Assembly (NCBI GenBank): GCA_002269645.1 | Contig: NIVC01000587.1 | Coordinates: 1 to 64,000 of the forward strand | DNA: 64,000 nt | Source of the DNA: Macrostomum lignano | Taxonomy: Eukaryota | Direction: 5' to 3' | Shown here: piece by piece, positions 11,341-59,392 of the stretch | How positions within the stretch are numbered: the stretch's first letter is position 1 | Layout: every line of letters begins with the position of its first letter | Made by a program: the position numbers and the translations under genes | Notes under the pieces: generated by a model | What the model saw: the letters and a program-made list of their open reading frames with translations, nothing else | Database searches by the model: none | Told to the model about the DNA's origin: nothing

Positions 11341-26843
<15,503 letters not shown>

Positions 26844-30074: not shown

Positions 30075-32471
30075 ATAGCTGTTGAAACCTGCAGATTTTT
30101 AACCCAGGCCAGGGAATTCCAATCATCAGAACTAGAGTATTTTTGCATGTATTCTGAAATCTGAGTCCATATTCAAAAAAACTTGTTAATAGTTAGCAGG
30201 ATAGAGATAAATATAAAATGGAAAATATTTATGTAAAATTAGGATTTGAACTTGAAGCAAACATTTGTTGGCTGGGGTGCTGCGCAGAATGTCAGGCAAT
30301 GTCTGTCTGACTCTTAAAACATGTTATCTCTTTTTTCTTTTCTCCTCTTCTCTCCTTTCTCCTCTCTTCTCTCGTATCCTCCCTCATCTCTCTTCTCTTT
30401 CATCTCTCTTATCTCATCTCTTCTCTCTACTTTTCTTGCTTTATTCCTTTCCTCTCTCCCCCTCTTCTCTCATCTCTTCCTTCTCTTCTCTATTTTCTCT
30501 CCTCTCTTCTCTCCCGTCTGCTCTCTCATCTCTCCTTTCTCCTCTTTTATCTCTTCTCATTTCTCTTTGCTCTCTACTCTCTCTTCTCTTTCCCCTCTTC
30601 TCATTCCTCACTCTTCCCTCTTTTAACACTTCCCTCTTCTCTTGTCTCTCCCTTATCTCAACTCTTTCCTCGCTTTCTCTCTCTCCTTTCATTTCTTCTC
30701 TTCTTCCCTCTCTCCTCTCTTCTCTCGTCTCTTCCATCACCTCTCTTCTCTCTCGTCTTTTCTTTCTCATCACTCCTTTTTCTTCTTTTATCTTTTCTTT
30801 CTTATCTCTTTTCTTTCTTATCTCTTCTCATTTCTCTCTGCTCTCCTCCCTCTCTTTCTCTTTCTCTCTCACTCTCTCTGTCTTTCTCTCTAATCTCTCC
30901 TCTTCCATCTCTCTTCTCCTCTCTACTCTCTTCCCTCTCCTCTCTCCTCACTCACGTCTCTCTCCCTTTGTTTCTCCTCTTGTCTCTGTACTCTGTAATC
31001 TCTTCTCTCTTATCTCTCCTCCGTTCTCTCTACCCTTCCATCTCTCGTCTGTTCACTCTCGTCTCTGCTCTCTCATCCCCCTCTTTCATCTGTCATCTTT
31101 ACTGTCTTATATGTTCTCTCACCTCTCTCCTCTGTACTCTATTCTTTCCCCTTTTTTGACTCCTCACTTTCCTTTCGCCTTTCTTCTCTTCTCTTCTCTT
31201 CTCTTCTCTTCTCTTCTCTTCCTCTTCTATACTCTCTCCCTCTCTTGTCTCCTCTCTTCTCTCTTCTCTTTCTCCCCACTTTCCTCTCTCCTCCGTCTCT
31301 CATTTCTCATTTCTCATTTCTTATCTCTCCTTACTCCTCTTTCATCTCTACAACCTTATCTCTTTTCTCTTCCCTTTACTCTCTCATCTCTCCCTTCACC
31401 TTTTTCCTCTTTCCTCTCTCCTTTCCTCTCTCCTGTCTCCTGTCTTCTCTCATCTGCAGCTCTCTGCTCTCTCATCTCTACTCTCTTCTCTCTCCTCTCT
31501 ACTCGCTCCTCTCTACTCTCTACTCTCTCCCCTCTTCTCCCCTCTCTCTCTCATCGTCCTCACCCCCTCATCTCTCCTATTATCTTCTATCTTTTCTCTT
31601 TGTCCCCTCTCTCACCTCTCCTCTCTTTTCGAATAATAGTCTATTCCTTCTTTCCACTCTCATCTGCCCCTCGGCCATGAGCTGGATTCTTTATCTGGCC
31701 TTTGAGGTAAAAGTCTGCCCATTTCTGCTTGGAAAGCCAGTTTGTTGGACGTAGTACTCTCATGGTTGTTCACATGCTTTGATCACGTCGTCTTTCTGGC
31801 CAATTTGCAGCTCTGCAAAGAATTTGCATAACTTCAGCTCCACTGCAGTCTATATCAGTCTAACAACCAAGGAAATACACATTTCTGAGGAGGCCGTTTA
31901 AATTTTAGAGTACCTTAGAGACTTAAGTGAAACTTAATGTTAAAACTTCAATGGTGTGACTTGTACTGCATTGCAATTGCATCGCTTTTTCAATCTTTCG
32001 CTTTTACAAAACATGCTGGATTGCCTTGATTTGCCAATTGCCAGTCACTGTTCAACTTCAACTGCTGCAGAGTTTGCCGATACAGACAGAGGACAGTGGT
32101 TAGAATTTCTCACTAAACTGTTATGGATGGCTAAACGTAGCCTCTCCATCGAGGTGCAAAGAAGGTTTACACACAGCACACAGACAATAGTTTAAGATTG
32201 TCTGTGTCAAATTTGAAGAGAATCGGTAGAAGTGGAGCGGCGCTAGGGAGGATTTAGTGAAAAAATGGCGCATTTTGAGCAGTTTTTTGCACTTTTAGGT
32301 AGGAAGACTCAAATTTAGGAAATTCAAAGGTAGCCTAAGACATTCTCCGTAGTGAGTTTAGGGTGGGTGCAAAATTCGGTGCAATTTGGTTGAGCGGTTT
32401 GGGAGTCCATAGCGAACAAATTTGTACACAGACACACACACACACAGAGTTTTGATTTTTATATGTAGAGA
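30075..32471 (-). mobile_element. Non-autonomous Helitron-like element copy 1 with internal ~1.35-kb CT-rich tract
   Basis: Shares both ends and internal blocks with 56403-59392. Minus-strand 5' end is A|TC with an AC microsatellite nearby. The 3' end is a degenerate hairpin plus CTAT. No TIR or TSD. Confidence 0.6.
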
Positions 32472-36000: not shown

Positions 36001-36908
36001 TTAGCAAGTTGTTTACGCCTGCAAGCTTGGGCTTCTAAACTTATCAGTCATTTCAGCTGCCGTTATTTTTTATAAATTTGCTTACGTATTCTTCTTTGCT
36101 ACTGAACTGAAAGTAGAAAGCTGTTTTACTAGGTATTTATGCCTGAGTGGCCCATCTTAGTATCTGTGTTTTAGAGTAATCTAGAGTCACTTCTTTTCTA
36201 TTTTACCTGTATGTGCTGGGTCTCTGCGTGCGTATCCGTGTGCTTGTGCAACTTCAGTGGCAGTGGAATGTGAACTAGCTAACCAAATAGCCGTCACAAC
36301 GCGGGTTGATCATCTGCGTAGCCAGAACATCATCCGACATCGACTTCCCGACAAAACCAAACCGACAGGACATCGATTTTGTCGGCTCCGGAGAACGTCT
36401 TCACGTCGGTCCGGAGGCCAAGGCCAGGCTGATGGCCACCCTGCAGAGCGACACCGAGTTCCTGGCCAACTGCCACCTCATGGACTACTCTCTGCTGGTT
36501 GGCATTCACGATCCCGCAGCTGGCGGCGGCTGTAAAGACGCTCGAGGAGCCGACGCTGCTGTTGCCGCCGCTGTTGAAGCGGCAACAGCCGGCGCCGCTG
36601 CCTCCGAAGGCGACGGCGCCGACGCTGACGAGGCCAGCTCGGGCAACGAGCTCGAACTCGGCGTCGGAGTTGCCGTTGACGACGCCTCGTTAGCCAGGGA
36701 GCGACGGTTCGCCGTGCCCGCCGCGGACCAGTCCCAGCTGCTGTACTTCATCGGCCTGATAGACATTCTCACTAAGTACGGCGTGCGCAAACGGACAGCC
36801 AAGACCTACAAGACCATGAAGCATGGCAACGAGGCCCAGTTGAGCTCGGTTAAGCCGGAAGTCTACGCGCGTAGATTTCTGGAGTTTGTGGACTCAAGTC
36901 TCGTCTAG
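33016..36908 (+). CDS. PIP4K2: Phosphatidylinositol-5-phosphate 4-kinase type II-like, ~398 aa, 5 exons
   Basis: Exons 33016-33129, 33229-33326, 33793-34125, 35150-35261, 36369-36908 (1197 nt). Motifs: [84 protein letters not shown], and a type II-like activation loop [13 protein letters not shown]. Confidence 0.93.
34195..35065. repeat. 30-bp minisatellite CCGTGAGGGGATGGCGTCCTCTCTGACGCA
   Basis: About 28 copies in PIP4K intron 3. Confidence 0.95.
35734..36168. mobile_element. hAT-type MITE copy 1 (435 bp) in a PIP4K intron
   Basis: TIRs CACAGATACTA...GATGGGCCACTCAG / CTGAGTGGCCCATC...AGTATCTGTG. Perfect 8-bp TSD TTTTAGAG at 35726-35733 and 36169-36176. Confidence 0.88.
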
Positions 36909-40390: not shown

Positions 40391-43300
40391 CTAAATGCTT
40401 TCGATGTCCTTGTAGTACTGCTCCAGGTCGGCCTTCAGCTTGCCAAGATTGTCCTTCTTCTGCTGGAGCTCCTCTGTGGTTATCGAGTTTATGAAATTAG
40501 CATTATAATTATAAAGTAAAGCATTTTTCGAGCTATGCTCAACTATGCTCAACGTTTGAGGTAGCAGAAGTTGGTAAGGCCGCACTGTTTACGTGTTAAA
40601 CTTCTATAATAAATTTGAATTTGTCCTCGATTTAGGAAGGGACAAATTGTTAAATGAAACACAACAGCCAAGCTACTATTGTAAACAATAGAGGAAAAGT
40701 ACATAACTACGAGGGGTGTTCCCGGAATGCATTTATGGTGAACGGCAGAATGTCAAAACGAGTTGAAATTCAAGCGAGCTAAATCGACCAGAAACGATTC
40801 AGGGCCAAGGATCAAAGGACGGCCGAATGGCACTTCAGTCTGGCAACACAGAATCGTTTAATAAAAACTTTTGCTGTTTTACCATTCAATACTCTCGTAG
40901 AATTGCAATGAGTTGTGGCTAAACATTTCACCTCATCCGGACATTCCTGCCGTTCACATGCAGTAAGCACAGTCAGGAGAATTTTGCAACACCCAATCGT
41001 ACTAACACTTTGACATCGACGCAAAAAAGAACTGATCTGGTTGTCAGCAATGCAATGCATGGATAGTGCTACTGTCTGTAAGTAGTATAGAACAAAAACA
41101 TTCAGCACAGACACAAGGATGGACAGTATTTTTTAACAGCTAGCTAGTACTACCAGTACTACTAAACAAAGAGCGGCATTAGTAGTAGTACAGTTAGGCC
41201 GCATATTTCACGGCCTGCAACAGTTGATCCAAGTCGCGTTTGAGTTTAGCCACCAGCTGGTGCTGCTGCTCAAGTCTGGCTGCAAATGCAAGGAAATTGT
41301 CGGAAAGTTTGCCAATGGAGGAATCTCTGAGAACAGAGCGATCGATTAGTCCATTGGTTCGTTGATAAGTGCAAAGCTCAACATATTTTTGCATAAGCAT
41401 GGGTGAACTCGCGAGTCTTTTAATGTGATTCATAAATTTATTCTAATTCTATAGAACTATTCTCTAAGCAGTAGATTATACGGTAAATAAGGTGGTACGG
41501 TTACAAAAATTTCTTCAAATGATATGCACGCCTGGATCCACCCAACCTACCTGGTTCCTCATGGGGTATCATCTACCTGTCACCCAATCTAGCTGGTTCC
41601 TCATGGGGTATCATCTACCTGTCACCCAATCTACCTGGTTCCTCATGGGGTATCATCTACCTGTCACCCAACCTACCCGGTTCTTCATGGGGTATCATCG
41701 CTACCTGTCACTCACCCAACTACCCGGTTCTTCATGGGGTATCATCTACCTGACACCCAACCTACCCGGTTCTTCATGGGGTATCATCTACCTGTCATCC
41801 AACCATCCAATCTGGTTCTTCATGGGGTATCATCTACCTGTCATCCAACCTACCCGGTTCTTCATGGGGTATCATCGCTACCTGTCATCCAACCTACCCG
41901 GTTCCTCATGGGGTATCATCGCTACCTGTCACTCACCCAACTACCCGGTTCTTCATGGGGTATCATCTACCTGACACCCAACCTACCCGGTTCTTCATGG
42001 GGTATCATCTACCTGTCATCCAACCATCCAATCTGGTTCTTCATGGGGTATCATCTACCTGTCATCCAACCTACCCGGTTCTTCATGGGGTATCATCGCT
42101 ACCTGTCATCCAACCTACCCGGTTCTTCATGGGGTATCATCTACCTGTCATCCAACCATCCAACCCTGTTCTTCAAACGGCCCACTAGCCTGCAAAAGCA
42201 CAGTACTCGGGTAGGTTTAAGAATTTTTGAGATTCAATTAAGAATATGATTTAATAGTCAACCTTAGTAAAAGGACGGCGAGAATTATTTAAAAGTAGAT
42301 TATCAAGTAATAACACCATATCATCAGTAGGTGAATCTAAAAAGTGCTAAAACTATAGCTATTGCAAGTGCAAACAAGGATATCAACAATACGGATCTGC
42401 AACCAGAATAAGTATGAACTAAAAATTGCCACGGCGGGGCGACTGAGAAATGACAACAAGATCGGTGCATTAGGAGCCGGATGACTGGACTGTGCATTCG
42501 AATAAAATAGCATCAACCGGTGTGCGACACGATGCAGACTGTCTGCTAAACAGTGCAGTTGGTGCATGTGGAGTTCCCTACATCCGCAAAGGTGTCAATC
42601 AATCAATATAATACCTTCCAACTGTTCGTTCTCCACCTGGCGAGCAAATGCCGCCCTCTCAGCCGCCTCTCTGCGTCTCTCGCTCTGTTATTGCATTTAA
42701 TTGAGTTCAAGCAGGCGCAGAATATTTTAGCAAACAACTGGCTACGGAAACACTTGGCTCTGTGCATTCATGACAAAGTACACGAAATAACAGTTCCCGC
42801 TTAGCCAATCGCTGATAGAAGAAGCATTATGTAAAAAACAAAAGAAGCGTCATTTAAAACATTTCAGAAGTGTCAAGTTAAAAAGAAACAAGAGTCATGT
42901 AAAACATAAAAGAAGCGTCATGTCGAACATGGAAGATTCATTTGGGAATTGCTACGATGTCAAGGCTTGGAGGGAATCACACTCGTGACAGGCTGTGTCA
43001 AGGCTTACGGTGGAAGAATTGCTGAGATGTCAAGGTTTTATGGTTACGGTTAGGGTTAGGTTTAGGGTTAGGGTTAGGATTAGGGGTATTGCTGAGACTT
43101 CTAGGCTCACTGGGGGATTGTTGAGATGTCAAGGCTCATGGGGGAGTCGCTGAGATGTCAAGGCTTACAAGGGAAATTGCTGCGGTTATTGCAAGGAGAA
43201 GCTACATGTAGTTGATTAAAAAATTTGTATTCATTTCTTTGTTGGGCGCTGATTGCTAGTAGTCATTACGCTCGTACTGAAAGTCGAAAATCAATTTTTA

Positions 43301-46300
43301 ATAACATTAAAACAAATAAAAATATGTATGGCGTTTAATTAAATGTCAAATAGTAGCTTGGCTGCGTCTCAAACACTCTAATTTCAGTAGAAAGTAGTTA
43401 AAAGTATCGAATTTCTTGTAATAACCTATACAAAAGCCTTCCGCCATCCCGACGTTCAGACTCATATAAAGAGCTCTGCAGTGCCCTAACATGGATTTGT
43501 CGTTACCTTCGGTCTCGTCAATTTCTTTTTGCCGGTTGGCCGCCTCCCGCTCGGCGGACTCTGCCCTCTCCTCGGCCTTGAATTGCGCGCATGCAGGGGG
43601 CGTATCGTGTTGGTGATTTGCGCTGCTTGACACTATGCTCCAGATTTACACTCGTTAATAGGGTTGGTTAAATATATACAACGCGTAGGTAATTAAGGAA
43701 AGTTTAACAAAAAATTAATATATAAAATGTCGACTCTGCTAGAGCAAAATTGCTGAATCGTTTAAAACACCTGGAATTTTAAACAGCATTTGCAACCTAC
43801 CTGACTGGGTAAGCCTATTAGAGGTACTATTAGCTCATTAACTGCACCTAACTTAATGCGTGAGAGTGGCAAAGAGGCTTTAGCCAGCGCCAGCACCAAG
43901 GGGCGCCAGCACCAAGGGGCGCCAGCACCAAGGGGCGCCAGCACCAAGGGGCGCCAGCACCAAGGGGAGCCAGCACCAAGGGGCGCCAGCACCAAGGGGC
44001 GCCAGCACCAAGGGGCGCCAGCACCAAGGGGCGCCAGCACCAAGGGGCGCCAGCACCAAGGGGCGCCAGCACCAAGGGGCGCCAGCACCAAGGGGCGCCA
44101 GCACCAAGGGGCGCCAGCACCAAGGGGCGCCAGCACCAAGGGGCGCCAGCACCAAGGGGCGCCAGCACCAAGGGGCGCCAGCACCAAGGGGCGCCAGCAC
44201 CAAGGGGCGCCAGCACCAAGGGGCGCCAGCACCAAGGGGCGCCAGCACCAAGGGGCGCCAGCACCAAGGGGCGCCAGCACCAAGGGGCGCCAGCACCAAG
44301 GGGCGCCAGCACCAAGGGGCGCCAGCACCAAGGGGCGCCAGCACCAAGGGGCGCCAGCACCAAGGGGCGCCAGCACCAAGGGGCTTTACCCCCTAGCCAT
44401 TAAACTCTAAAACCTGAGTAGGTAATACGATCGCGTCCCCTGAACCGATGCAAAAGTCAGGTAAGTAACCAAGCGCTCACCTCTTTCAGCTTCAGAGTGA
44501 GATCCATGATGAGCTTCTCGTTGCTTTCTTCCTTCTGGACTGACTGTGAAAGGAATTGGTTGAGGGTAGAATGGCGGAATTAGAGATCGCTCTGTCCTGA
44601 AAATAAATTTTCTTACTCACATGGCGGTAAAAAGCTCTTGCAAGGCATGCAAGGTTAAACAAAACAAAGAATGATAATCCTCTTTGAACTTGATCGCATG
44701 CTTTCGCAGAAATGGGATTTTAACATGAAATTTGCTGAACTTGGCTTGCAGATGCATGGACTGCGTGGCCGAATCGCTATTTTTAGCTTTCAAGCTTAAA
44801 TCACTTCAATTGAATCACTGATCCCAATGCAATGCAGTTCGTACATGCACAGGCAAATACAATTGATCCCCTATTCTCGATGTAGATTAGCAATCCATCT
44901 GATCCCTAATCCTCTGGATAGATTAGCAATTCATCTGATTCCCTAATCCCCAGGGTAGATTAGCAATCCATTAGATCCCTTAATCCCCAGGGTGATTAGC
45001 ATTCCATCTGATCCCCTAATCCTCTGGATAGATTAACAATCCATCTGATGCCCTAATCCTCTGGATAGATTAGCAATCCATCTGATCCCCTAATCCTCAG
45101 GATAGATTAGCAATCCATCTGATCCCCTAATCTTCAGGATAGATTAGCAATAAATCTGATCCCCTAATACTCATGATAGATTAGCAATCCATCTGATCCC
45201 CTAATCCTCAGAATAGATTAGCAATCCATCTGATGCCCTAATCCTCTGGATAGATTAGCAATCCATCTGATCCCCTAATCCTCAGGATAGATTAGCAATC
45301 CATCTGATCCCCTAATCCTCAGGATAGATTAGCAATCCATCTGATCCCTTAATCCCCAGGGTGATTAGCAATCCATCTGATCCCTTAATCCCCAGGGTGA
45401 TTAACATTCCATCTGATCCCCTAATCTTCAGGATAGATTAGCAATCCATCTGATCCCCTAATCCTCAGTAAAGATTAGCAATCCATCTGATCTCCTGATC
45501 CTCAGGATAGATTAGCAATCCATCTGATCCCCTAATCCTCAGGATAGATTAGCAATCCATCTGATCCCCTAATCCTCAGGATAGATTAGCAATCTATCTG
45601 ATCCCCTAATCCTCAGGATAGATTAGCAATCCATCTGATCCCCTAATCCTCAGGATAGATTAGCAATCCATCTGATCCCCTAATCCTCAGGATAGATTAG
45701 CAATCCATCTGATCCCCTAATCCTCATGATAGATTAGCAATCTATCTGATCCCCTAATCCTCAGGATAGATTAGCAATCTATCTGATCCCCTAATCCTCA
45801 TGATAGATTAGCAATCTATCTGATCCCCTAATCCTCAGGATAGATTAGCAATCCATCTGATTTTCCAATCCACGTATCACCAGAAGAGGCTAAGTACAGC
45901 AGACTACGAGACCCATGTCATGCAGGTGTTCTCAACTGCAAAAGCGATGAGCTCCAATCCACTACAAAACTGAGAATTTTTCCCACCGTTGATGCCGCAC
46001 GCAGGCGACTGGAGGCCGCCAGCTGCTCCGAGATTTCACGCGATCCCAGCCGAATCCCGGCTGCCCGGAGCGCCTCTTCCAGTTCGAGCACCTTGCTGGA
46101 TCAAGTTTAGGCCGGAGAGCAAACAGGGAGAGGCTGAGTCAGGGATATTTAACAGTGACAAGCTGTACACAGGCACCCTGAGTGTACAGCGGCCCAGACT
46201 TTCTAATCGTCAGGCATGTACACTCTGTGTTCATCACACGACAACCCAACCTAGGGGTAAAAAATTAACAATAATAAGCTTGAGCGAAACAAAACCGAAA

Positions 46301-48707
46301 CGCCTCTTCAAGCCTGCCGCTCTGCTGCCAAAGCATGCGATGCAAGCATTTTATTAGTTATAATAAATACTTCTAACTGGCTTAAAGCATTTCCAAACCT
46401 TTGCCTCGCTGATCTCTAACGATTTCAAATGAATAGTGACCAGGTTCAGCTCGTCCCGGAGCTCTTTGACCTTCTTCTCGGCCGCGTCCGAGCGATCCTC
46501 TGCCTTGGCCAGCTGCTCTTCGGCCAGTTGAAGCTTTCTTCGAACCTTAATAACGACAAGTCGGTCGGCCCAGGTGGCCAAGATTGTTAGTAAATTGTGT
46601 GCAGAGCAGCAGCGCACTGGAGCAAAATCAATTGTCAGAAATGCAGGCATGGATGTCACCTAGCTAAACATAGGCTTAGACTGCTGATAGTGTAGTACTC
46701 GGCTGCAAGGGCAAGCGTAGTTACGCTGTCACCATAGCAACAGCAATAATTGCAAGATGATTTTGGGCACTACACTACACTAAGGCATGTACATCTCTGT
46801 GCCTTGTGAATCGCACCACAATTCACCGGCCAATTTTATGACAGGCCCAAATGAATGTGGCCAAGAAGTTCGGATTTCTTAAAGAAAACGGGCATTTAGG
46901 CAGAGGCAGCGATCGTCAGCGTGCTAAAAAACTGAAGCAATTGAAGCAATGGATAGAGCGTAAATGAGTGCAACAGCTACTTTAATTCAAGCATTTTCTC
47001 TGATACCTGTCTAAAACAGCCTTATTCAACAGTCAGGGAGTATGAACTGCAAATCAATCTGGAACATGCAGCAACCCGCATGCCAAATCCAGATATTGCA
47101 ACACTCTAGAAAGGCAACCTGTCAGCAAAACTGAAGCGGCAATTATCGCTCTCCGCTGTTGCTGCTGCTGCCTCGCTTAGCAACGGTTGCTGGGGCTGGG
47201 TCTCGTCGGGGGGCAGGCGACTGCGTCGTTTCAGCCTATAGCGCACACAATTCGGGACGGCAAAGTTTGCTTTGAATCTGACTGTAGCCTGCATGCCTAC
47301 AGACATTTAGAATAAACAATAAATATGCAGCACGCGCGGAAGCGCGCTTCAGTGAGCGCATCTTAGATTGTAATTAATAAAACAAAACAGGGCGGAGATT
47401 TGAATTACTAGATGTCCAAGAAATCATTTAGCAACTAAGTAACTAAGATATTTGCTAGCTAAATAGGTGAAAGGTAAAATTAATAAAAAATCCCACTATA
47501 ACAGAGATAAGCCGTCATCACCTCCTCCAGATTGGTCTCTGCGTCGCTAGCAGCGTCTGTGGCCTCGTTGACAAGCTGCTCCAGCTGGTTGATCCGGCTG
47601 TCATCAATGTTCTGCCGATTTTCCAGCACTTTGCGAGCCCTGTTTATTATTATTACTGTTATTAATCATACTGCGTGCATGCATGAGCGCCTAAGTGAAA
47701 CAGGCTTGGCAGGTGGATGCTAATGCCAAAAGTAAAGTTATCTCAATTTCAAAGCACATGTTTTCAAAAAACCTATTCCTCAACTAAATTAACAAATTAG
47801 AATTATTGGACAACATAAATTTTTTTACCAAAATGATATTTTAAAAAAAAATTTCCTCTGACTTCAAACTTTTCATTTTGATGAATTTGATGGTATAAAA
47901 ACTAAAATTGAGAATAGGTAATGCATGACTGCTTATATAATTTTTAATACAAAAAAGTTTAAAAATGCAAAAATATATTCAGACATTAGGTGTATGTGGA
48001 TAACATAAAAAATAGATTTATATATTTACTTGCTAAAATAGAAAAAAATAATTATCATAACAATAAGTTATTCAATTAAGTTTTTAGAATAGGTATTAAT
48101 ATTTACCTTTCACTTTCTTCTGCTGTCTTGTTTGCTTCTTGAAGCTTCTGATTGGTATCGTTCAATCGACCTTCAGTCTGTTCAAGCTCATCTTCTAGAA
48201 GCTGAATTCTTCTAGCAAGACTTTGGACTTCTGTCTCTGCCTAGAAAAATTGATAAAAAACATGTTTATAATTAATATTTTACCATTTGAAAAACACTTT
48301 AAAGGGAAGAAAATACAACTAAATGTTAATTTATGTGTAATAAAGTTGTTCAATACACTTAAATATAAAGTTATTTTGCTAAGAAAAAAGTTAACGTCAT
48401 AAAGGTGAGAATAAATATTTGCTGAAATGAAAAACTAGAGATCTAACAGCCACAGATAGCCGATAAGCACAGTCAAATATTTTATACTATAGTAAAATGA
48501 GGTAAAATGGATGAGCTAATAGAAACATGCATTGTTTTGCAAAATTGCAGTAATTACCGAGTTGCGAAGCTCAACTTCCATCTTTAATTCTTCCTCTTTA
48601 CGCTCAAGTTCATCAGTGACTTTGTCCAAATCGTTTTTTAGGCCTTGCATTTTTTGTTTTAAAACAGACAAAACACCTTGTGTTTGGTTGTTCTTCTCGG
48701 CCGCCAT
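40391..48707 (-). CDS. Tropomyosin, short (low-molecular-weight) isoform, ~254 aa
   Basis: Exons 48707-48558, 48240-48107 (134 nt), 47639-47522 (118), 46545-46399 (147), 44543-44481 (63), 43576-43507 (70), 40473-40391 (83). These sizes equal the canonical tropomyosin exons 3, 4, 5+6, 7, 8 and 9. Sequences include AETEVQSLARRIQLLEDELE, ARKVLENR and AEERAESAERE. Confidence 0.93.
41194..41279 (-). CDS. Alternative terminal tropomyosin exon 9
   Basis: TTGCAG acceptor, phase 1. Encodes heptad-like ARLEQQHQLVAKLKRDLDQLLQAVKYAA* (86 nt), parallel to exon 40473-40391. Confidence 0.7.
41538..42170. repeat. 42-bp minisatellite ACCTACCCGGTTCTTCATGGGGTATCATCTACCTGTCATCCA
   Basis: About 14 copies with 3-4 bp indel variants. 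Confidence 0.93.
42615..42684 (-). CDS. Alternative (duplicated) tropomyosin exon 8
   Basis: 70 nt, AG acceptor and GT donor, phase 0 to 1. Encodes SERRREAAERAAFARQVENEQLE, homologous to AEERAESAEREAANRQKEIDETE at 43576-43507. Confidence 0.75.
43044..43085 (+). repeat. Short interstitial (TTAGGG)n-like tract
   Basis: 7 hexamers: TTACGG TTAGGG TTAGGT TTAGGG TTAGGG TTAGGA TTAGGG. Confidence 0.7.
43885..44383. repeat. 16-bp GC-rich minisatellite GGCGCCAGCACCAAGG
   Basis: About 31 near-perfect copies. Confidence 0.96.
44865..45865. repeat. 37-bp minisatellite GATAGATTAGCAATCCATCTGATCCCCTAATCCTCAG
   Basis: About 27 copies. Confidence 0.95.
47106..47288 (-). CDS. Candidate alternative terminal exon after tropomyosin exon 4 (low-complexity tail)
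   Basis: GC-rich island in an AT-rich intron. A CAG acceptor in phase 0 gives ATVRF...RRSRLPPDETQPQQPLLSEAAAATAESDN...PF* (60 aa). ATTAAA lies about 120 nt downstream. Alternative acceptors at 47235 and 47296 give other short tails. Confidence 0.35.
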   Translation of the reverse strand, partial: ATVRFKANFAVPNCVRYRLKRRSRLPPDETQPQQPLLSEAAAATAESDNCRFSFADRLPF

Positions 48708-49277: not shown

Positions 49278-51579
49278 CTTTCGTAGCGATTGCGAAATCA
49301 TGTTTTGAATCTCGGCACCAATGATGGAAAACTTGATCATTGTGCTTGAGTTGAGATTTACTGCTGAAAGGCCGCGCATAATCACACCCTTCTCGTCCAC
49401 TTGACCCCTGGAGTCTGTGGACATTGTCGATGCAGTGTCGCTATCGGAACAGCTTCCATAGTCCGAGAACAATGGGTCTTTGCTGAGCAGATAGGCCAGA
49501 TCAGAAGCCGCTGAATCTCTGCGTTTTTCCCTCCAATTGTTGGCCCAATGTGCGCCCCCTGCCGCGCCTCCGTAGCTTGAGGCGCCAAGCGACTCCATTT
49601 TTTCTGGCGTCGACGGCGCTCCTTCTGGATCGGGCCGCTGCTGATTGCGCGGGCACAGCCGATCACCGCCACGACGTCGAGGCGGTCGACGCTTACGTTT
49701 GCTGCCGCCGCCAGCTGAAGAAGACGAGAACGGTGACGCATTGTGCGGCTTGAGTGACCGCCCGGTGGCGCTGGATGCCGACGGAGCAACCGAGACGCCC
49801 AAATCCGGCTGGCGCTGCTGTTGGCGATAGCAACGGTCGTAGTATTCCGGATCGAACGTTATCGTGAAGACCGAGTTGTCCGAGGTCACGTGACGTTGCA
49901 CTGGAGGCGGCGAGCGTCTAGAACGAGATCGAGCAGCGGCGACGGCTGCTGCTGCCGCTGCTGTAGCGCTGGGCGAATACGGCCGCTCAAACAGCTGCTG
50001 TTGTTGCTGCAGCAGCTGCTGCTGCAGTGGCAAACTGTTTGAATGGCGCTGTTTTCGATGCGGCGGCTGGTACAGAGATTGGCTGCTGTGATACTGCTGC
50101 TGCATCAGGCCTTCGACTTTAAAGCGGCTCTTGATGCCTCCGCTTGTCGACTGTTGGGCTCCGGAGCATCGCTGCTTCTGCTTCTCCTGGACGTGGGCCC
50201 AGTGTCGGTTAGAGGATTCGCGCGTCGAATTCGATGCAGCCGCAGCTGTGAGCGACGTCGAAGATGAAGATGGCGGCAGCGAGTTTGACGGAAGAAGGAA
50301 AAGAAATTTGTCCTCGGCTGGGCGCTAGAATTCGAATAGTGAAATCTGATTTGTCTGATCGATACTTGTCTGCCTAACGTACAGCTAAATGTACTTAACA
50401 ATCTAATGAATTTAAAATTAATGAGTTTCTTCATAATGAATTAAGAAACTTGAAGACAGAAAAGGTCAACAGACTTACTCGAACTTTCTCCGCCTCAGGC
50501 GCTCGATGATGCGACCGCTTCTCACGAGCCGAGTCGAACTGGCGATCGGATGAGGATCTGATCGAGGATGGCAGGAATGAGTAAAGACAGTTTGCATATT
50601 CAGTAGGCAATCCGCCAAGTCTCTGTCATCATAAGTTCACTGGATTTAAGGGCAACGCGGCGACATTGAATCAGCATTCAGCGACGACGTATTATGTACG
50701 AGTATACTTTCGAGATGAAATTGATACACAAGAAAAGTTATGTACTTTTTTACTGTAATCTTACCATGAGGCAGGGATTTTGACCGAAGTCAAAATGCCC
50801 TATACGAGCTGTACATGTAGGCCACAAATAAACCCAGATGCTCATTTAAACAATTGGACATTTTATTACACCTGCTCTAATGGCAGATGTGCAACCGATA
50901 GCTCAGCCGCAGCTATTGCGCGGCGCATCTGAAGGCTGCGTACGGCTGTTCAGTCCAAGGACTGGGGGGTCGCCACACACACCCTCAATTACCCCAGTTA
51001 ATGCTGGCACCCATTTTACAGCTGGGTGAACTGAAGCAATGCAGAGCTAAGTGTCTTGCTCAAGGACACGTTCCGGACAAGTTCTCGTTCCGAATGGGTC
51101 GAGAACGAATCCCCGACATTTAAGTCGTGAATCCGACGCTAAGTCTAACCACTAGGCTGCAACCCCTATCCAATATTGGACTGCATTGAAAATGTTGTTA
51201 TCCAATATAGTCCCATATTTTACGCTTTGATCTTGGTTTATTTAAAAATAACGACAACCATCGTGAAACAATGCATTTTTTTATACGCGTAAGCAAAACG
51301 GATTTTTACGGGGGGTTACGTGTTTTCGTGACGCCATTATTTGAGAAGGCCCTTGAAGCACTATTTGCACCTATATTTACCTGTGGGAATCTTTTAGCGA
51401 ACACCAGCTTTAAGGGCTCCAAAGCAGTAACGGGTCGCATCCGGGTTGTCTGCTAGCACTTTTAATTGTGAATGACCAGGAATATCCCTCCCAACAGGCT
51501 TAACTCACCTTCCAAGAGCGCCATCCTTGTCCAACTTGACCGTCAGTATCTTCCTGACGGTTGGCTGCTGGTGATCCAT
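49278..51579 (-). CDS. Alternative 5' exons of tropomyosin encoding a ~399-aa low-complexity head (Tm1-I/C-like long isoform)
   Basis: Exons 51579-51509 (ATG to GTGAGT donor, phase 2), 50557-50479 (phase 2 to 0, GTAAGT donor) and 50324-49278 (349 open codons, GTAGG donor, phase 0). These join exon 48240 in frame: ...IKFSIIGAEIQNMISQSLRK|AETEVQSLARRIQLL. Confidence 0.75.
50850..51166 (-). mobile_element. tRNA-derived SINE with CORE/Meta-like central domain, near full length
   Basis: Head GGGGTTGCAGCCTAGTGGTTAG (box A-like) with a degenerate box B. Core GTGTCCTTGAGCAAGACACTTAGCTCTGCATTGCTTCAGTTCACCCAGCTGTAAAATGGG. Two further copies in the window. The 3' boundary is approximate. Confidence 0.75.
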
Positions 51580-55046: not shown

Positions 55047-55430
55047 CTACCACTTGAAATCCGTGACTGGGTTGGCTTTGTACGCGCAATATTCGCTCTG
55101 ATTAAAGTAGGACAGCTCCGCCTCGTGAACTAAGCCGCAGCTGGACAAGGTGGCCGAATCGTCGCTCAGAGTCAGCGCCTCATCATTGTCAACATTGACA
55201 ACTAGATCGTTAGGCTTGGCAGCCTGGGGTAGGCAATGAATTTTCAAAGTGTCAAAGTTGAACGATTTAAAAGTTGGCGGCAGCGACCTGCTTGTTGCTA
55301 TGGCGTTGCGAATAGCGCCTTTTAGTTCGGCTACAGTCAGCTTATCCAGGTCAAGCGAGTGCAGCACCAAGTTGCGCACATTCTTGAACTCAAAGGATCG
55401 AATCAAGCGGACAGTCAATGTTGACGTCAT
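55047..55430 (-). CDS. C2orf76: UPF0538 / C2orf76 homologue (DUF2340, ubiquitin-like fold), 127 aa, single exon
   Basis: MTSTLTVRLIRSFEFKNVRNLVLH...FDTLKI...KPNDLVVNVDND...ELSYFN...Y-ANPVTDFKW matches the recalled family pattern and length. Confidence 0.88.
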   Translation of the reverse strand: MTSTLTVRLIRSFEFKNVRNLVLHSLDLDKLTVAELKGAIRNAIATSRSLPPTFKSFNFDTLKIHCLPQAAKPNDLVVNVDNDEALTLSDDSATLSSCGLVHEAELSYFNQSEYCAYKANPVTDFKW

Positions 55431-55868
55431 TTGGAGTGACACTGACAGGCCGGGCCAACACGCTGAAGCAATTAAGGATAAAGAAAAAAAAATAATAGCA
55501 GTTTGTTTTCAACTAAAATAACACGTTTTCTGTTGAAATGTAGTTGCAAACTGCAACTAGCCTAGCTGGGATAAAAAAGTAAAAAACTTTCTCTGTCCAG
55601 GTCACTTCATCCCTAGGAAACATTTTGTCCAGAAAGTTCATCTTTGAGTTATTGTCAAATTTGCAAAACTATAAAGATTAAATACAGGATAGCCTAAACA
55701 ACTTTCTAGGAATATACATATAGGCTAAACTCAAAGGCCCATCAGCTTATTGTTTGTTTTTAAATACGAGCTACTTGAGAATTTAATACCATTTGACATA
55801 CATTACCAATTTGAAGCTAGCTACAGTCAAACTTAGTTAAAAAGGATCACTAAAAAACAATAAAAGTA

Positions 55869-56402: not shown

Positions 56403-59392
56403 CAAGCTGTTGAAACCCGCGGATTTTGAACCCGGGGAATTCCAATCCCCGGAACTACTTTTGCATGTATTCTGAAATCTAAGGCCATACACAAACAAAT
56501 TAATGCTAGTGGGATAGAGGTAGACATAAAATGGAGCACATTCGTGTAAAATTAGGGTTTGAGGCAAACGTTGATATTGTTTGCTGGGGTACTCCACAGA
56601 ATGCCAGGCAATGTCTGTCTGACTCTAAAACATGTATTGGCAAACTCTGGCCTCTCCCTGACTCTCCCTTATGTCCCTTGGATCCTTTAAAATTTCTATC
56701 GTCTCTCTGTTTCCTTTATTCTCTCTCATCCCTCGTCTCTCGTCTCTCCTCTCTCCTCTCTTCTCTCGTATCTTCCCTCATCTCTCTTCTCTTTCATCTC
56801 TCTTATCTCATCTCTTCCCTATTCTTTTCTCTCTCCTCTCCTCTCTCCTTTCTACTTTTGGTTTTCTCTCTGCTCTCCTCTCTCCTCTCTACTCTCGTTT
56901 TCTCTCTGCTCTCCTCTCTCCTCTCTACTCTCCTCTCTCCTCTCTACTCTCGTTTTCTCTCTCCTCTCCTCTCTCCTCTCTCCCATCTTCTTTCGTATAT
57001 TCCCTCATCTTTCTTCTCTTTCATATCTCTTATCTCATCTCCTCCCTCTTCTTTTCTCTCTGCTCTCCTCTCTCCTCTCTCCTCTTTCGTTTTCTCTCTC
57101 CTCTCCTCTCTCCCATCTTCTTTCGTATATTCCCTCATCTTTCTTCTCTTTCATATCTCTTATCCCATCTCTTCCCTCTTCTTTTCTCTCTCCTCTCCTC
57201 ACTCCTCTCTACTTTTTTGTTTTCTCCCTCCTCTCCTCTCTCCTCTCTCCCCCTCTTCTCTCGTCTCTTCCTTGTCCTCTCTATTCTTTTCACTCTTCTC
57301 TTAACTCTCTCCTCTACTCTCTCATCTCTCCTCTCTACTCTTTCCTCTCTCTCTCTCTCCTCTCTCCCCTCTTCTCTCGTCTCTTCCCTCACCTCTTTCC
57401 TCTCTCTCTTTCCTCTAATCTCTTTTCTTGTTTTATCTCTTCTCTCTCCCCTCGTCGCTCGTCTCTTCCCTCACCTCTCTTCTCTCTCGTCCGCTCTTTC
57501 ATCTCTCCTTTCTCTTCTTTTATCTCTTCTCTCTTATCTCTCCTCTGTTCTCTCTACTCTCCCATCTCTCGTCTGTTTATCTGCTCTCTCATCTGTCATC
57601 TTTACTCTCTTATACGTTCTCCCACTTATCTCCTCTGTACTCTTCTCTTTCACCTCTTCTGACTCCTCTCTTTCCTTACTCCTTTCTTCTTTTCTACTCC
57701 TATACTCTCTCTCCTCTATTATCTTCTCTCGTCTCTCTGCACTCTCCTCTCACCTTTTTCATCTCTCATCTCTTCTTTCATCTGTCTCATCTCTACAATC
57801 TCATCTCTTTTCTCTCTCCTCCTCTTCCCTTTACTCTCTCATCTCTCCTTTCTCCCCTCTTCTTTCACCACTCTCTTATCTCTATCTCTTCTCTTCTCAC
57901 TCCTCTCTCCCCCTCTTATCTCCTCTCTTCTCTATCCTTTCTACTCTCTCCTCTTTAATCTCTCCTCTCCTCTTGACCCTCTGTCATCTTCTTTCTGCTC
58001 TCTCATCTCTACTCTCTTCTCAATCTTCTCTACTCTCCTCTCTCATCGATCCTCTGTCTCATCTCTCCCCTCTTCTCACCTTTACTCTTTCCTCTCCTTC
58101 CTTTCTCCCCTCCTCTCGCTTCTTCCTCCCTTCTTCTCTGCTCTCTCCTCACCACTTTTACTTTTCACTCTCATCTGGCCCGCAGCCATGAGCTGGATTC
58201 TTTATCTGGCCTTTGAGATAAAAATCTGCCAATCCCTGCTTCGAAAGTACTATCATGGGACGCAGTACCATCATAGTTGTTATCATTTCTCATGATTTAA
58301 TCACGTCATCTTTCTGGCCAATTAGCAGCCCTGAGAGGAATTTGTGTATCTCCATTCTCCAGCTCCACCACCACAGTCTGCAGCAGTCTAACAACCAAGG
58401 AAATGCATATTTCTTAGGAGGCCATTTAAATTTTAAAGTTACCTTATGCGAATCTCAATGTTAAAATTTTCATGGTGTAACTAATTTAGTAGGATTGCAT
58501 TGTAATCAGTTATTCATTAATTTTTAAATATTTTTATAAACCATCCCACATTGCCTTGATTTGCCATCCTTGTTCAACTGCTGCGACTTGTCTATACAGA
58601 GGACAGTAGTTTGAATCTCTGCTAAACTTTCTCCTCTCTACGCCTCTCCACTCGCGGGGGTACAGAGAAGGCTATTAAAAAGTTATTCCAAAACACTGTA
58701 CATTCGCTATGTACATTGAGCCCTATTGCCTGATCCTTCGTCTGGGGGAATGAGTTGGATGAGCGGCAAACAACAGAAAAAGCAGACAAACTTCACATGC
58801 TTACAGTTTCTTTTTCGGTTGAGTTACAGAGTTGAAACTTTACATTTAGACAGAGAATGGGTCAATGAAGAATTGTGTCAAGTTTGAAGTCAAACACTTT
58901 ACGTGGAGCAAACTTATGGCAGCTTAAAGTTAGTCAATTTTGAAACCCTTTTACACATCTGGGCCCAGATCGGGAAAGAGAGGCAGGCGGGCGGAGGTTG
59001 GGGTGGTTGCTACGCTGAAAAAAACAGCCTAACTTTAAAAGTGCACATCGGCTTTCAGGATTAACTTTAAGATTTGAAATTTTACACGATTGTGTCAAAA
59101 TAGTTTAAAATTGCCTGTGTCAAATTTGAAGAGAATCGGTAGAAGTGGAGCGGCGCTATGGAGGATTTAATGAAAAAATTGCGCATTTTGAGCAGTTTTT
59201 TGCACTTTTAGGTAGGAAGACTCAAATTTAGGAAATTAAAAGGTAGCCTAAGACATTCTCCGTAGTAAGTTTAGGGTGGGTGTAAAGTTTGGTGTCATTT
59301 GGTTGAGCGGTTTGGGAGTCCATAGCGATCAAAATTGTCCACACACAGACACACACATAGACACACAGAGTTTTGATTTTTATAGTTAGAGA
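56403..59392 (-). mobile_element. Non-autonomous Helitron-like element copy 2 with internal ~1.5-kb CT-rich tract
   Basis: Minus strand begins A|TCTC and ends with an imperfect GC hairpin CCCGGGTTCAAAATCCGCGGG, then 13 nt ending CTTG|T. Homologous to 30075-32471 with about 400 bp extra near 58680-59100. Confidence 0.62.

Follow-up and report, generated by a model that had tools for sequence, protein, structure and literature searches.

A flatworm tropomyosin gene with a probable aTm1-type head isoform and a junction module that recurs among protostomes

The window analysed here comprises the first 64,000 nucleotides (nt) of contig NIVC01000587.1 from the flatworm Macrostomum lignano (assembly GCA_002269645.1), and its minus strand carries a tropomyosin gene preceded by a long reading frame that we call the head. 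The main head exon, h3, lies at 49278–50324 (1047 nt, acceptor ...attctag) and ends in a phase-0 donor that reads AAG followed by GTAGGA. Two further coding exons are proposed upstream of it, namely h1 at 51509–51579 (71 nt, with an ATG start, a GTGAGT donor preceded by AG, and the peptide MDHQQPTVRKILTVKLDKDGALG/R) and h2 at 50479–50557 (79 nt, acceptor ...gatcag, donor GTAAGT, peptide SSSDRQFDSAREKRSHHRAPEAEKVR). The three sum to 1197 nt, or 399 stop-free codons, with exit phases of 2, 0 and 0. The head frame then meets tropomyosin exon 3, which opens GCAGAG (AETEVQSLARRIQLL), in phase 0 at an acceptor reading tttttctag followed by GCAGAGACAGAAGTC (48240), the next usable acceptor downstream of the h3 donor.

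All three exons lie where the initial annotation of this DNA had placed them, and the matching phases and in-frame join to exon 3 that it described are confirmed by the 399 codons that run without a stop into 48240. Its description of the donors as strong applies to the canonical GTGAGT of h1 and GTAAGT of h2; the GTAGGA of h3 is only moderate. In our view the region probably serves a genuine Macrostomum tropomyosin gene as an alternative 5′ coding block, yielding an isoform of the aTm1 (Tm1-I/C) type that would be, by homology, an adaptor or regulator of kinesin-1. In the fly, aTm1 is a well-studied partner of kinesin-1 in the transport of oskar messenger RNA (mRNA).

The downstream exons of the gene were placed by tblastn together with inspection of the splice sites, and all lie on the minus strand. 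Exon 1b (48558–48707, MAAEKNNQ...ELRNS) is the first coding exon of the short conventional isoform; it sits between the head and exon 3 and would be intronic in the head-containing transcript. Exon 3 (48107–48240, AETEVQSLARRIQLLEDELEQTEGRLNDTNQKLQEANKTAEESE/R, ending in phase 2) is common to both isoforms and provides the acceptor for the head. It is followed by exon 4 (47522–47639, ARKVLENRQNIDDSRINQLEQLVNEATDAASDAETNLEE), exon 5/6a (46399–46545, VRRKLQLAEEQL...SLEISEAK), exon 7 (44481–44543, SVQKEESNEKLIMDLTLKLKE), exon 8a (43507–43576, AEERAESAEREAANRQKEIDETE) and the terminal exon 9b (40391–40473, EELQQKKDNLGKLKADLEQYYKDIESI and a stop). Candidate alternatives to these are an uncertain exon 6b (46014–46097, SKVLELEEALRAAG...), an exon 8b of the same 70-nt length as 8a (42615–42684, SERRREAAERAAFARQVENEQLE) and a terminal exon 9a (41194–41279, ARLEQQHQLVAKLKRDLDQLLQAVKYAA and a stop).

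Exon 1b together with exons 3–9 encodes 254 amino acids that match the Pfam Tropomyosin family (PF00261) over positions 3–241 of 242 with 188.7 bits. Joined to exons 3–9, the head gives an in-frame protein of 603 amino acids with GT-AG at every intron, which scores 77.8 bits against Pfam Tropomyosin over exons 3–4. The two isoforms have exons 3–9 in common, that is, the same coiled coil from A400 onwards, whereas the short isoform starts at exon 1b with the usual actin-binding N-terminus and has neither the head nor the coil extension described below. Head-containing models in the databases (P0001, P0003, P0015 and P0029) also pass directly from head to exon 3, without exon 1b. An in-frame splice from the head through exon 1b to exon 3, which would use an A-rich AG located six bases ahead of the ATG of exon 1b, was considered and judged unlikely given its poor pyrimidine tract.

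The head is rich in serine, arginine, alanine, glutamine and proline (63, 39, 38, 32 and 27 residues, respectively) and basic, with an isoelectric point (pI) of 10.25 for the whole and 11.1 for residues 1–279. Exon h3 encodes residues 51–399 and has its first ATG at 50105 (M124); the N-terminal part of this stretch is basic and of low complexity, and three conserved motifs come after it. The first, RPDPEG (49620–49637, residues 280–285), comes after the basic cluster KRKRRPPRRRGG. The second, DPLFSDYGS (49452–49478, residues 333–341), is followed by an acidic Ser/Asp stretch. The third, the junction motif NSSTMIKFSIIGAEIQNMISQSLRK (49278–49352, residues 375–399), constitutes the N-terminal extension of the coiled coil.

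Each of these motifs recurs in other animals. Motif 1 takes the form RP[ED]PEG[GA] in mollusc, annelid, nemertean and some flatworm-type matches, 60–95 residues upstream of the junction motif, and is replaced by RLEPEG in schistosomatid matches. Motif 2 aligns with LLYSDYGSQSDED of the trematode Trichobilharzia regenti and with DPLFSD of molluscs and annelids. For the junction motif, 55 sequences give the consensus N-S-x-T-[ML]-[IM]-K-F-x-I-I-x-x-E-L-x-N-[IV]-x-x-x-[SQ]-L-[KR]-[RK], in which E388 and N391 are kept in all 55 and T378 in 54 of them.

An AlphaFold2 prediction based on a 17-sequence alignment gives predicted local distance difference test (pLDDT) values below 50 across most of residues 1–364, two short helices excepted, and one unbroken helix from 376 to 602 that spans the exon junction, with pLDDT of about 79–87 at residues 380–400 and above 90 beyond. 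The predicted helix therefore starts 24 residues ahead of the exon boundary, in line with the fly crystal structures. Composition, pLDDT and pI all describe the long disordered low-complexity N-terminal domain that is expected of an aTm1, in agreement with the Q/S/A/R-rich disordered region noted initially. The ordered segment said to end that region appears as a helix in the model, and its start is here corrected to about S376.

The open frame of h3 runs to 351 codons, and only a Shal channel exon has a longer one in the window when frames overlapping tandem-repeat arrays are left out of the ranking. A decaying relic or a chance open frame without a product, which the large share of low-complexity sequence might suggest, is hard to reconcile with the intactness of these 351 codons, with canonical splice sites, or with the survival of all three motifs, including the residues invariant in the 55 sequences. 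We regard such an origin as extremely improbable.

The last 37 residues of the head plus exons 3–4 were searched with phmmer against 177,635 PDB sequences. The top three matches were the Drosophila aTm1 chains 7BJG, 7BJS and 7BJN (E = 5.6e-21, 3.2e-20 and 3.9e-15, respectively), which outrank all conventional tropomyosins, and the alignments reach up to 26 residues upstream of the exon-3 boundary. At the junction, LNSSTMIKFSIIGAEIQNMISQSLRK followed by AETEV in the window aligns with FSSDTMMKFNIIRNELHNIMNTQLKR followed by AESEV in fly aTm1, and the window motif is homologous to fly aTm1 residues 257–281. Within the extension, 10 of 26 residues are identical, and both sequences follow the pattern T-M-x-K-F-x-I-I-x-x-E-[LI]-x-N-...-L-[KR]-[KR]. 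The fly aTm1 alignment also confirms as real the insect junction IKFSII..EL.NI....L.R/AE.EV, which the initial annotation had put forward, and counterparts of the motif occur in the tropomyosins of other phyla as well.

In the fly, the coil of aTm1 is lengthened by 20 residues described as "unique" (PMC8247599), and residues 259–324 are ordered in the crystal structures (7BJG/7BJN/7BJS). Residues 247–334 form the minimal region that binds kinesin heavy chain (Khc), and this region largely restores oskar localisation in the mutant (PMC8247599). The substitutions I267A/L271A in the extension strongly reduce Khc binding and oskar localisation, the triple mutant I267A/L271A/L279A abolishes Khc binding, and L296, L300 and L307 belong to the shared core of the coil (PMC8247599). 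When the residue mapping is anchored on fly R281 at window K399, the six core residues I267, L271, L279, L296, L300 and L307 fall on I385, I389, L397, L414, L418 and L425, with five of the six identical and L271 to Ile as the one change. Both the coil extension of about 20 residues (fly about 259–281), recognised by sequence homology, and the hydrophobic residues of the Khc-binding core are found in the Macrostomum model.

Fly aTm1 and the proposed isoform each arise as an alternative product of their tropomyosin gene, and each has a long disordered domain at the N-terminus, which binds RNA in the fly and is basic in the window. In the Macrostomum gene model, as in aTm1, isoform-specific 5′ coding sequence is joined to exon 3 (residue 81 of long tropomyosin), a helical extension of about 25 residues peculiar to the isoform stands right before that exon, and exons 3–4 are common. 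The remainder of the head cannot be aligned between the two. Flatworm, mollusc and annelid heads carry RP[ED]PEG and PLFSDYG, whereas insect heads have LRC...AER...CADYPGLAFG instead, and the window model may open with a vestigial exon 1a, unlike fly aTm1. To our knowledge there is no oskar in flatworms, and any cargo must therefore differ from that of the fly.

In the proposed isoform, the phase-0 donor of h3 would be spliced straight to exon 3, skipping exon 1b. The basic disordered head of the product would comprise roughly 280 to 400 residues, and its final 25 would lengthen the tropomyosin helix N-terminally. By homology with fly aTm1, this extension and exons 3–4 (residues ~376–480) probably form an amphipathic helix that either pairs with itself antiparallel or enters the kinesin tail, inserting antiparallel into the parallel tail dimer of the kinesin-1 heavy chain at its alternative cargo-binding site, as one chain to two in a triple coiled coil. 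The basic head would then have the kinesin autoinhibitory region beside it and could make contact with RNA or other cargo, so that the isoform would act as an adaptor or regulator of kinesin-1 rather than as an actin-binding tropomyosin. The kinesin tail's alternative cargo-binding site is conserved from fungi to animals (PMC8247599).

The combination of head and rod, with a head of low complexity, is also in keeping with an intermediate-filament-like cytoskeletal polymer, as proposed for fly Tm1-I/C, in place of a kinesin partner. However, in the fly such assembly depends on an Asn/Ser-rich tail of 69 residues, which is restricted to the subgenus Sophophora (PMC7519307), and the tail therefore defines the fly protein and not the wider family. 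In the window, read-through past exon 4 meets a stop after 13 codons, and no Asn/Ser/Thr-rich open frame of at least 45 codons was found downstream, minisatellite frames aside, in a search that small exons could have escaped. Neither the shortened coil with a unique low-complexity tail that marks aTm1 nor the assembly-driving tail of a head-rod-tail cytoplasmic intermediate filament was found there, and it is the kinesin-binding extension, not a tail, that is conserved. Because no comparable tail frame lies downstream of exon 4, the intermediate-filament analogy should not be transferred to this isoform; the filament-like behaviour invoked in the initial annotation thus finds no support, and we consider a polymer of this kind very improbable. 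Its other suggestion, that the isoform is not an arthropod stand-in for missing intermediate filaments, fits with the conservation of the kinesin-binding extension in a flatworm.

The closest sequences to the proposed kinesin-1 partner are trematode gene models, namely T. regenti P0001 and the Schistosoma models P0003 (for example, S. haematobium XP_051064558.1, 'tropomyosin, variant 2'). The best match to the head end plus exons 3–4 is P0001, with 48% identity over 96% of the query, and it runs LLYSDYGSQSDED...ALSAVYLNSGTLIKLAIIGVELQNVVKVSLRK into exon 3. On the T. regenti contig, the head exon ends ...SLRK followed by gtgagg, exon 1b comes about 90 base pairs (bp) further on, and exon 3 follows; the order and phase of these three exons match the window. 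Trematode models and the window have an identical donor position and exon order, and share LxSDYGS, [RL][ED]PEG (RLEPEG against RPDPEG) and ALSAV.LNS.T[LM]IK..IIG.E[LI]QN....SLRK. The trematode heads are shorter than the Macrostomum head and not Q/A/S-rich, and the schistosome models place the full exons 1a and 2 (80 coiled-coil residues) before the head, whereas the window has a 24-residue exon-1a-like start only. On the T. regenti model, PF27015 proved to be a weak match to a desmoplakin spectrin repeat and was set aside as coiled-coil noise.

A profile combining the head ends of the window and T. regenti with 20 residues of exon 3 found 60 matches at E<1e-3, 13 of them at E<1e-10, among 1.84 billion representative proteins. 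Where a match is not cut off after the junction, the matched stretch in most cases lies inside a longer protein and tropomyosin sequence follows it. Names were obtained for representatives, and about one third of the profile matches have no taxon. Named matches include Schistosoma spp. among Platyhelminthes, the nemertean Lineus longissimus as a predicted (XP_) isoform, predicted isoforms of the molluscs Patella, Haliotis, Aplysia and Mytilus, and a gene model of the annelid Paralvinella. Among arthropods, predicted isoforms come from the spider Parasteatoda, the collembolan Folsomia and the insects Hetaerina, Daktulosphaira and Aphidius, and other insect gene models from Phyllotreta, Anopheles, Contarinia and Sergentomyia. 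None of the profile matches looked deuterostome, cnidarian or nematode, a non-detection only, as no dedicated search was made in those groups.

Comparison of the head end plus exon 3 with metazoan proteins thus finds the module fused to tropomyosin in several phyla. The initial annotation had supposed that the isoform belongs to an older protostome system, and this is borne out by the occurrence of the module in Platyhelminthes, Mollusca, Annelida, Nemertea, Chelicerata, Collembola and many insect orders.

A head-only profile was built from non-arthropod head ends to exclude any contribution of the tropomyosin residues, and it matched 19 of 19 arthropod heads at 20–36 bits and none of 1,900 shuffled decoys. 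As a single sequence, the window head end compared with arthropod heads gave a marginal match (E about 0.01). A single-sequence homology search with the head only scored nothing, but low-complexity words had probably filled the candidate list, so that this search is uninformative.

Insect aTm1-type heads (P0026, P0034, P0041, P0043–P0048, P0053 and P0056) have sequence features of their own. They bear an extra [RK]RGHQHHPR motif at the N-terminus and, immediately ahead of the junction helix, LRC.SE..E[VI].AER...R..CADYPGLAFG, neither of which is present in the flatworm. The NCBI names of some insect-head proteins are unrelated, for example 'mediator subunit 1', 'myosin-10' and 'nucleoporin GLE1'.

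The position of the module within the gene is also conserved. In Haliotis rufescens, exon 2 (490–624) is followed by the head exon (2001–2537) and by exon 3 from 12739, and in Parasteatoda exon 2 (701–799) is followed by the head exon (2001–2336, with the donor right after LKR) and by exon 3 at about 2677–2808. Abalone and spider both encode the head in one exon, which has an ATG of its own and is flanked by exons 2 and 3. The Haliotis, Parasteatoda and flatworm loci agree, so that the module keeps its position in Mollusca, Chelicerata and Platyhelminthes. Head, junction and coil furthermore stand in one open reading frame in three mRNA-like contigs of about 1.27 kb that were assembled independently (P0005).

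This arrangement bears on whether the head exons could instead form an independent gene, with a protein ending ...SLRKVG and functionally unrelated to the downstream tropomyosin. Such a gene would account for the stop two codons beyond the donor, and many database proteins do end just past the junction (...SLRRV or ...SLKRV), with the valine encoded by the GT of the donor. However, the flatworm and spider loci examined have a GT in phase 0 immediately behind the last basic residue, and many gene calls from other phyla continue beyond the junction, their next codon being Val. In predicted NCBI isoforms and in the mRNA-like contigs the head end is linked to exon 3, the head occupies a conserved place immediately before exon 3 in four phyla, and its last 25 residues are one half of a helix that continues unbroken into exon 3 in the AlphaFold model and the fly crystal structures. 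We therefore find an independent gene very improbable. The many database proteins that stop just after the donor bear out the expectation of the initial annotation that ab initio callers would split the head off, and it is a point for annotation in general that such callers repeatedly make the head exon a separate gene ending just past its donor.

Less settled than the junction of this tropomyosin isoform is the 5′ end of its message. Exon h1 (MDHQQPTVRKILTVKLDKDGALGR) is similar to the opening ~24 residues that tropomyosin exon 1a encodes (MD/EAIKKKM.AMKLDKENA.D.). When a 26-residue exon-1a profile, partly written by hand, was scanned against all 2,466 six-frame peptides of the window, h1 ranked first (E = 0.005) and exon 1b second; in a tblastn search with human TPM1, 8 of 16 positions of h1 were identical (E = 4.3). 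As a coding exon, h1 thus has weak to moderate support. No conservation was found for h2, which was placed solely by its frame and splice signals. A likeness between KRSHHRAP in h2 and the insect N-terminal KRGHQHHPR was unsupported and treated as chance.

A possible, if rather doubtful, variant keeps the same module and the same splice to exon 3 and leaves h1 and h2 outside the message. In that case h3 would be the first coding exon, translated from M124 (ATG at 50105), and the head would have ~276 residues. The transcript could arise from a promoter of its own or from a spliced leader trans-spliced at the 50324 acceptor. Both a start at M124 and a trans-spliced leader are live alternatives; Macrostomum lignano trans-splices many of its genes. 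The single-exon heads of abalone and spider, each with its own ATG, speak for this start, as do the lack of conservation in h2 and the exact coincidence of the h3 frame start with the AG acceptor, which is at the same time an in-frame TAG. Against it, the 73 codons from the acceptor to M124 stay open, h1 is the best exon-1a match in the whole window, and the schistosome and related models (P0003, P0004 and P0011) put exons 1a and 2 before the head. We consider the large exon h3 and its junction well supported, and h1 and h2 as coding exons plausible but unproven.

Several points weigh against an aTm1-type isoform at this locus. The GTAGGA donor of h3 falls short of a strong consensus, and when unspliced there the frame ends two codons on (...SLRKVG and a stop), so that a head-only product is formally possible. 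An exact look-up of the unspliced 278-residue head frame returned no record, and homology and profile searches of protein databases gave no Macrostomum protein among the matches for the head; the splice from 49278 to 48240 in this species is proposed from comparative gene structure. Kinesin binding is predicted from the conserved core residues only. The 3′ exons given to the head-containing transcript in the 603-residue model are putative. To these points are added the failure to find a fly-like tail, and exons h1 and h2, which are without conservation support apart from the weak likeness to a partly hand-written exon-1a profile.

Other genes lie in the same window. An intronless open reading frame of about 127–131 amino acids at 55047–55442 (minus strand) matches DUF2340 (UPF0538/C2orf76-like) with 130 bits; sharing its strand with the tropomyosin gene and lying directly upstream, it bounds that gene's 5′ side, and an exact look-up of the frame gave no record. 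At 25734–26843 (minus strand) a Shal/Kv4 channel has its large first coding exon, which covers the N-terminus, the T1 domain and the sequence up to the pore and is 96% identical (346/359) to Macrostomum lignano UniRef A0A1I8JED2, the next best matches being mollusc, nemertean and brachiopod sequences at 74–78%. This identity points to a Macrostomum flatworm (a paralogous copy in M. lignano or a close congener), so that the initial annotation's condition, "if this is a flatworm", holds. At 17482–17594 (minus strand), within the Shal/Kv4 exon for the pore/S6 segment, the Rfam family K_chan_RES (RF00485, potassium channel RNA editing signal) scores 73.5 bits, its gathering score being 51; some eight of the model's pairs are non-canonical, and the score may reflect coding conservation and not an editing hairpin. 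An exon on the plus strand (36306–36908) matches Pfam PIP5K with 115 bits; its product, the C-terminal half of a phosphatidylinositol phosphate kinase, includes an Ala/Gly/Asp-rich insert.

Repeats are abundant throughout. Tandem Repeats Finder reported 45 rows with units of 4–221 bp, a very high minisatellite and microsatellite density, with examples at 43887–44384 and 44864–45861 (in tropomyosin introns), 20928–21811 and 24259–25093, and these tandem repeats generate most of the long spurious open frames of the window. Head intron 1 holds an element resembling a short interspersed nuclear element (SINE) derived from a transfer RNA (tRNA) at ~50870–51170 (minus strand), with a GGTTGCAGCCTAGTGGTTAG... 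head followed by a ...GTCCTTGAGCAAGACACTTAGC... core; ARAGORN called no tRNA at this element. Two similar CT-rich, imperfect polypyrimidine tracts of about 1.4 kb each, with strong GC and AT skew, lie at 30265–31680 and 56531–58191 (plus strand).

Fly aTm1 has been called "present in Drosophilidae" and its coil extension "unique" (PMC8247599). The literature searched treats aTm1 as fly-specific, and in that search, which did not cover two key 2016 studies (Cho et al., Veeranan-Karmegam et al.), we found no report of conservation outside insects, so that the wider distribution is apparently unreported. The sequences from other phyla are already public, as unremarked "tropomyosin isoform X" models. 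It is this breadth across phyla that forms the interesting part of the finding. The isoform looks as old as protostomes, and the module may be older than they are.

We tentatively propose, as an idea slightly more apt to be wrong than right, that the head and junction module represent a partner which kinesin-1 already had in ancestral protostomes, hundreds of millions of years before oskar, and that in Macrostomum the isoform would serve as an adaptor or regulator for RNA granules or organelles, for example in the germline or stem cells. If this were true, the oskar role and the filament-forming tail of the fly protein would be late additions to an old motor-regulating isoform. The finding sets what is ancient in the protein (the kinesin-binding helix and the basic disordered head) apart from what is recent (the filament-forming tail), and it argues against an origin of the isoform as an arthropod replacement for lost intermediate filaments. 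Its ancestral function is testable in Macrostomum, planarians, Platynereis and molluscs.

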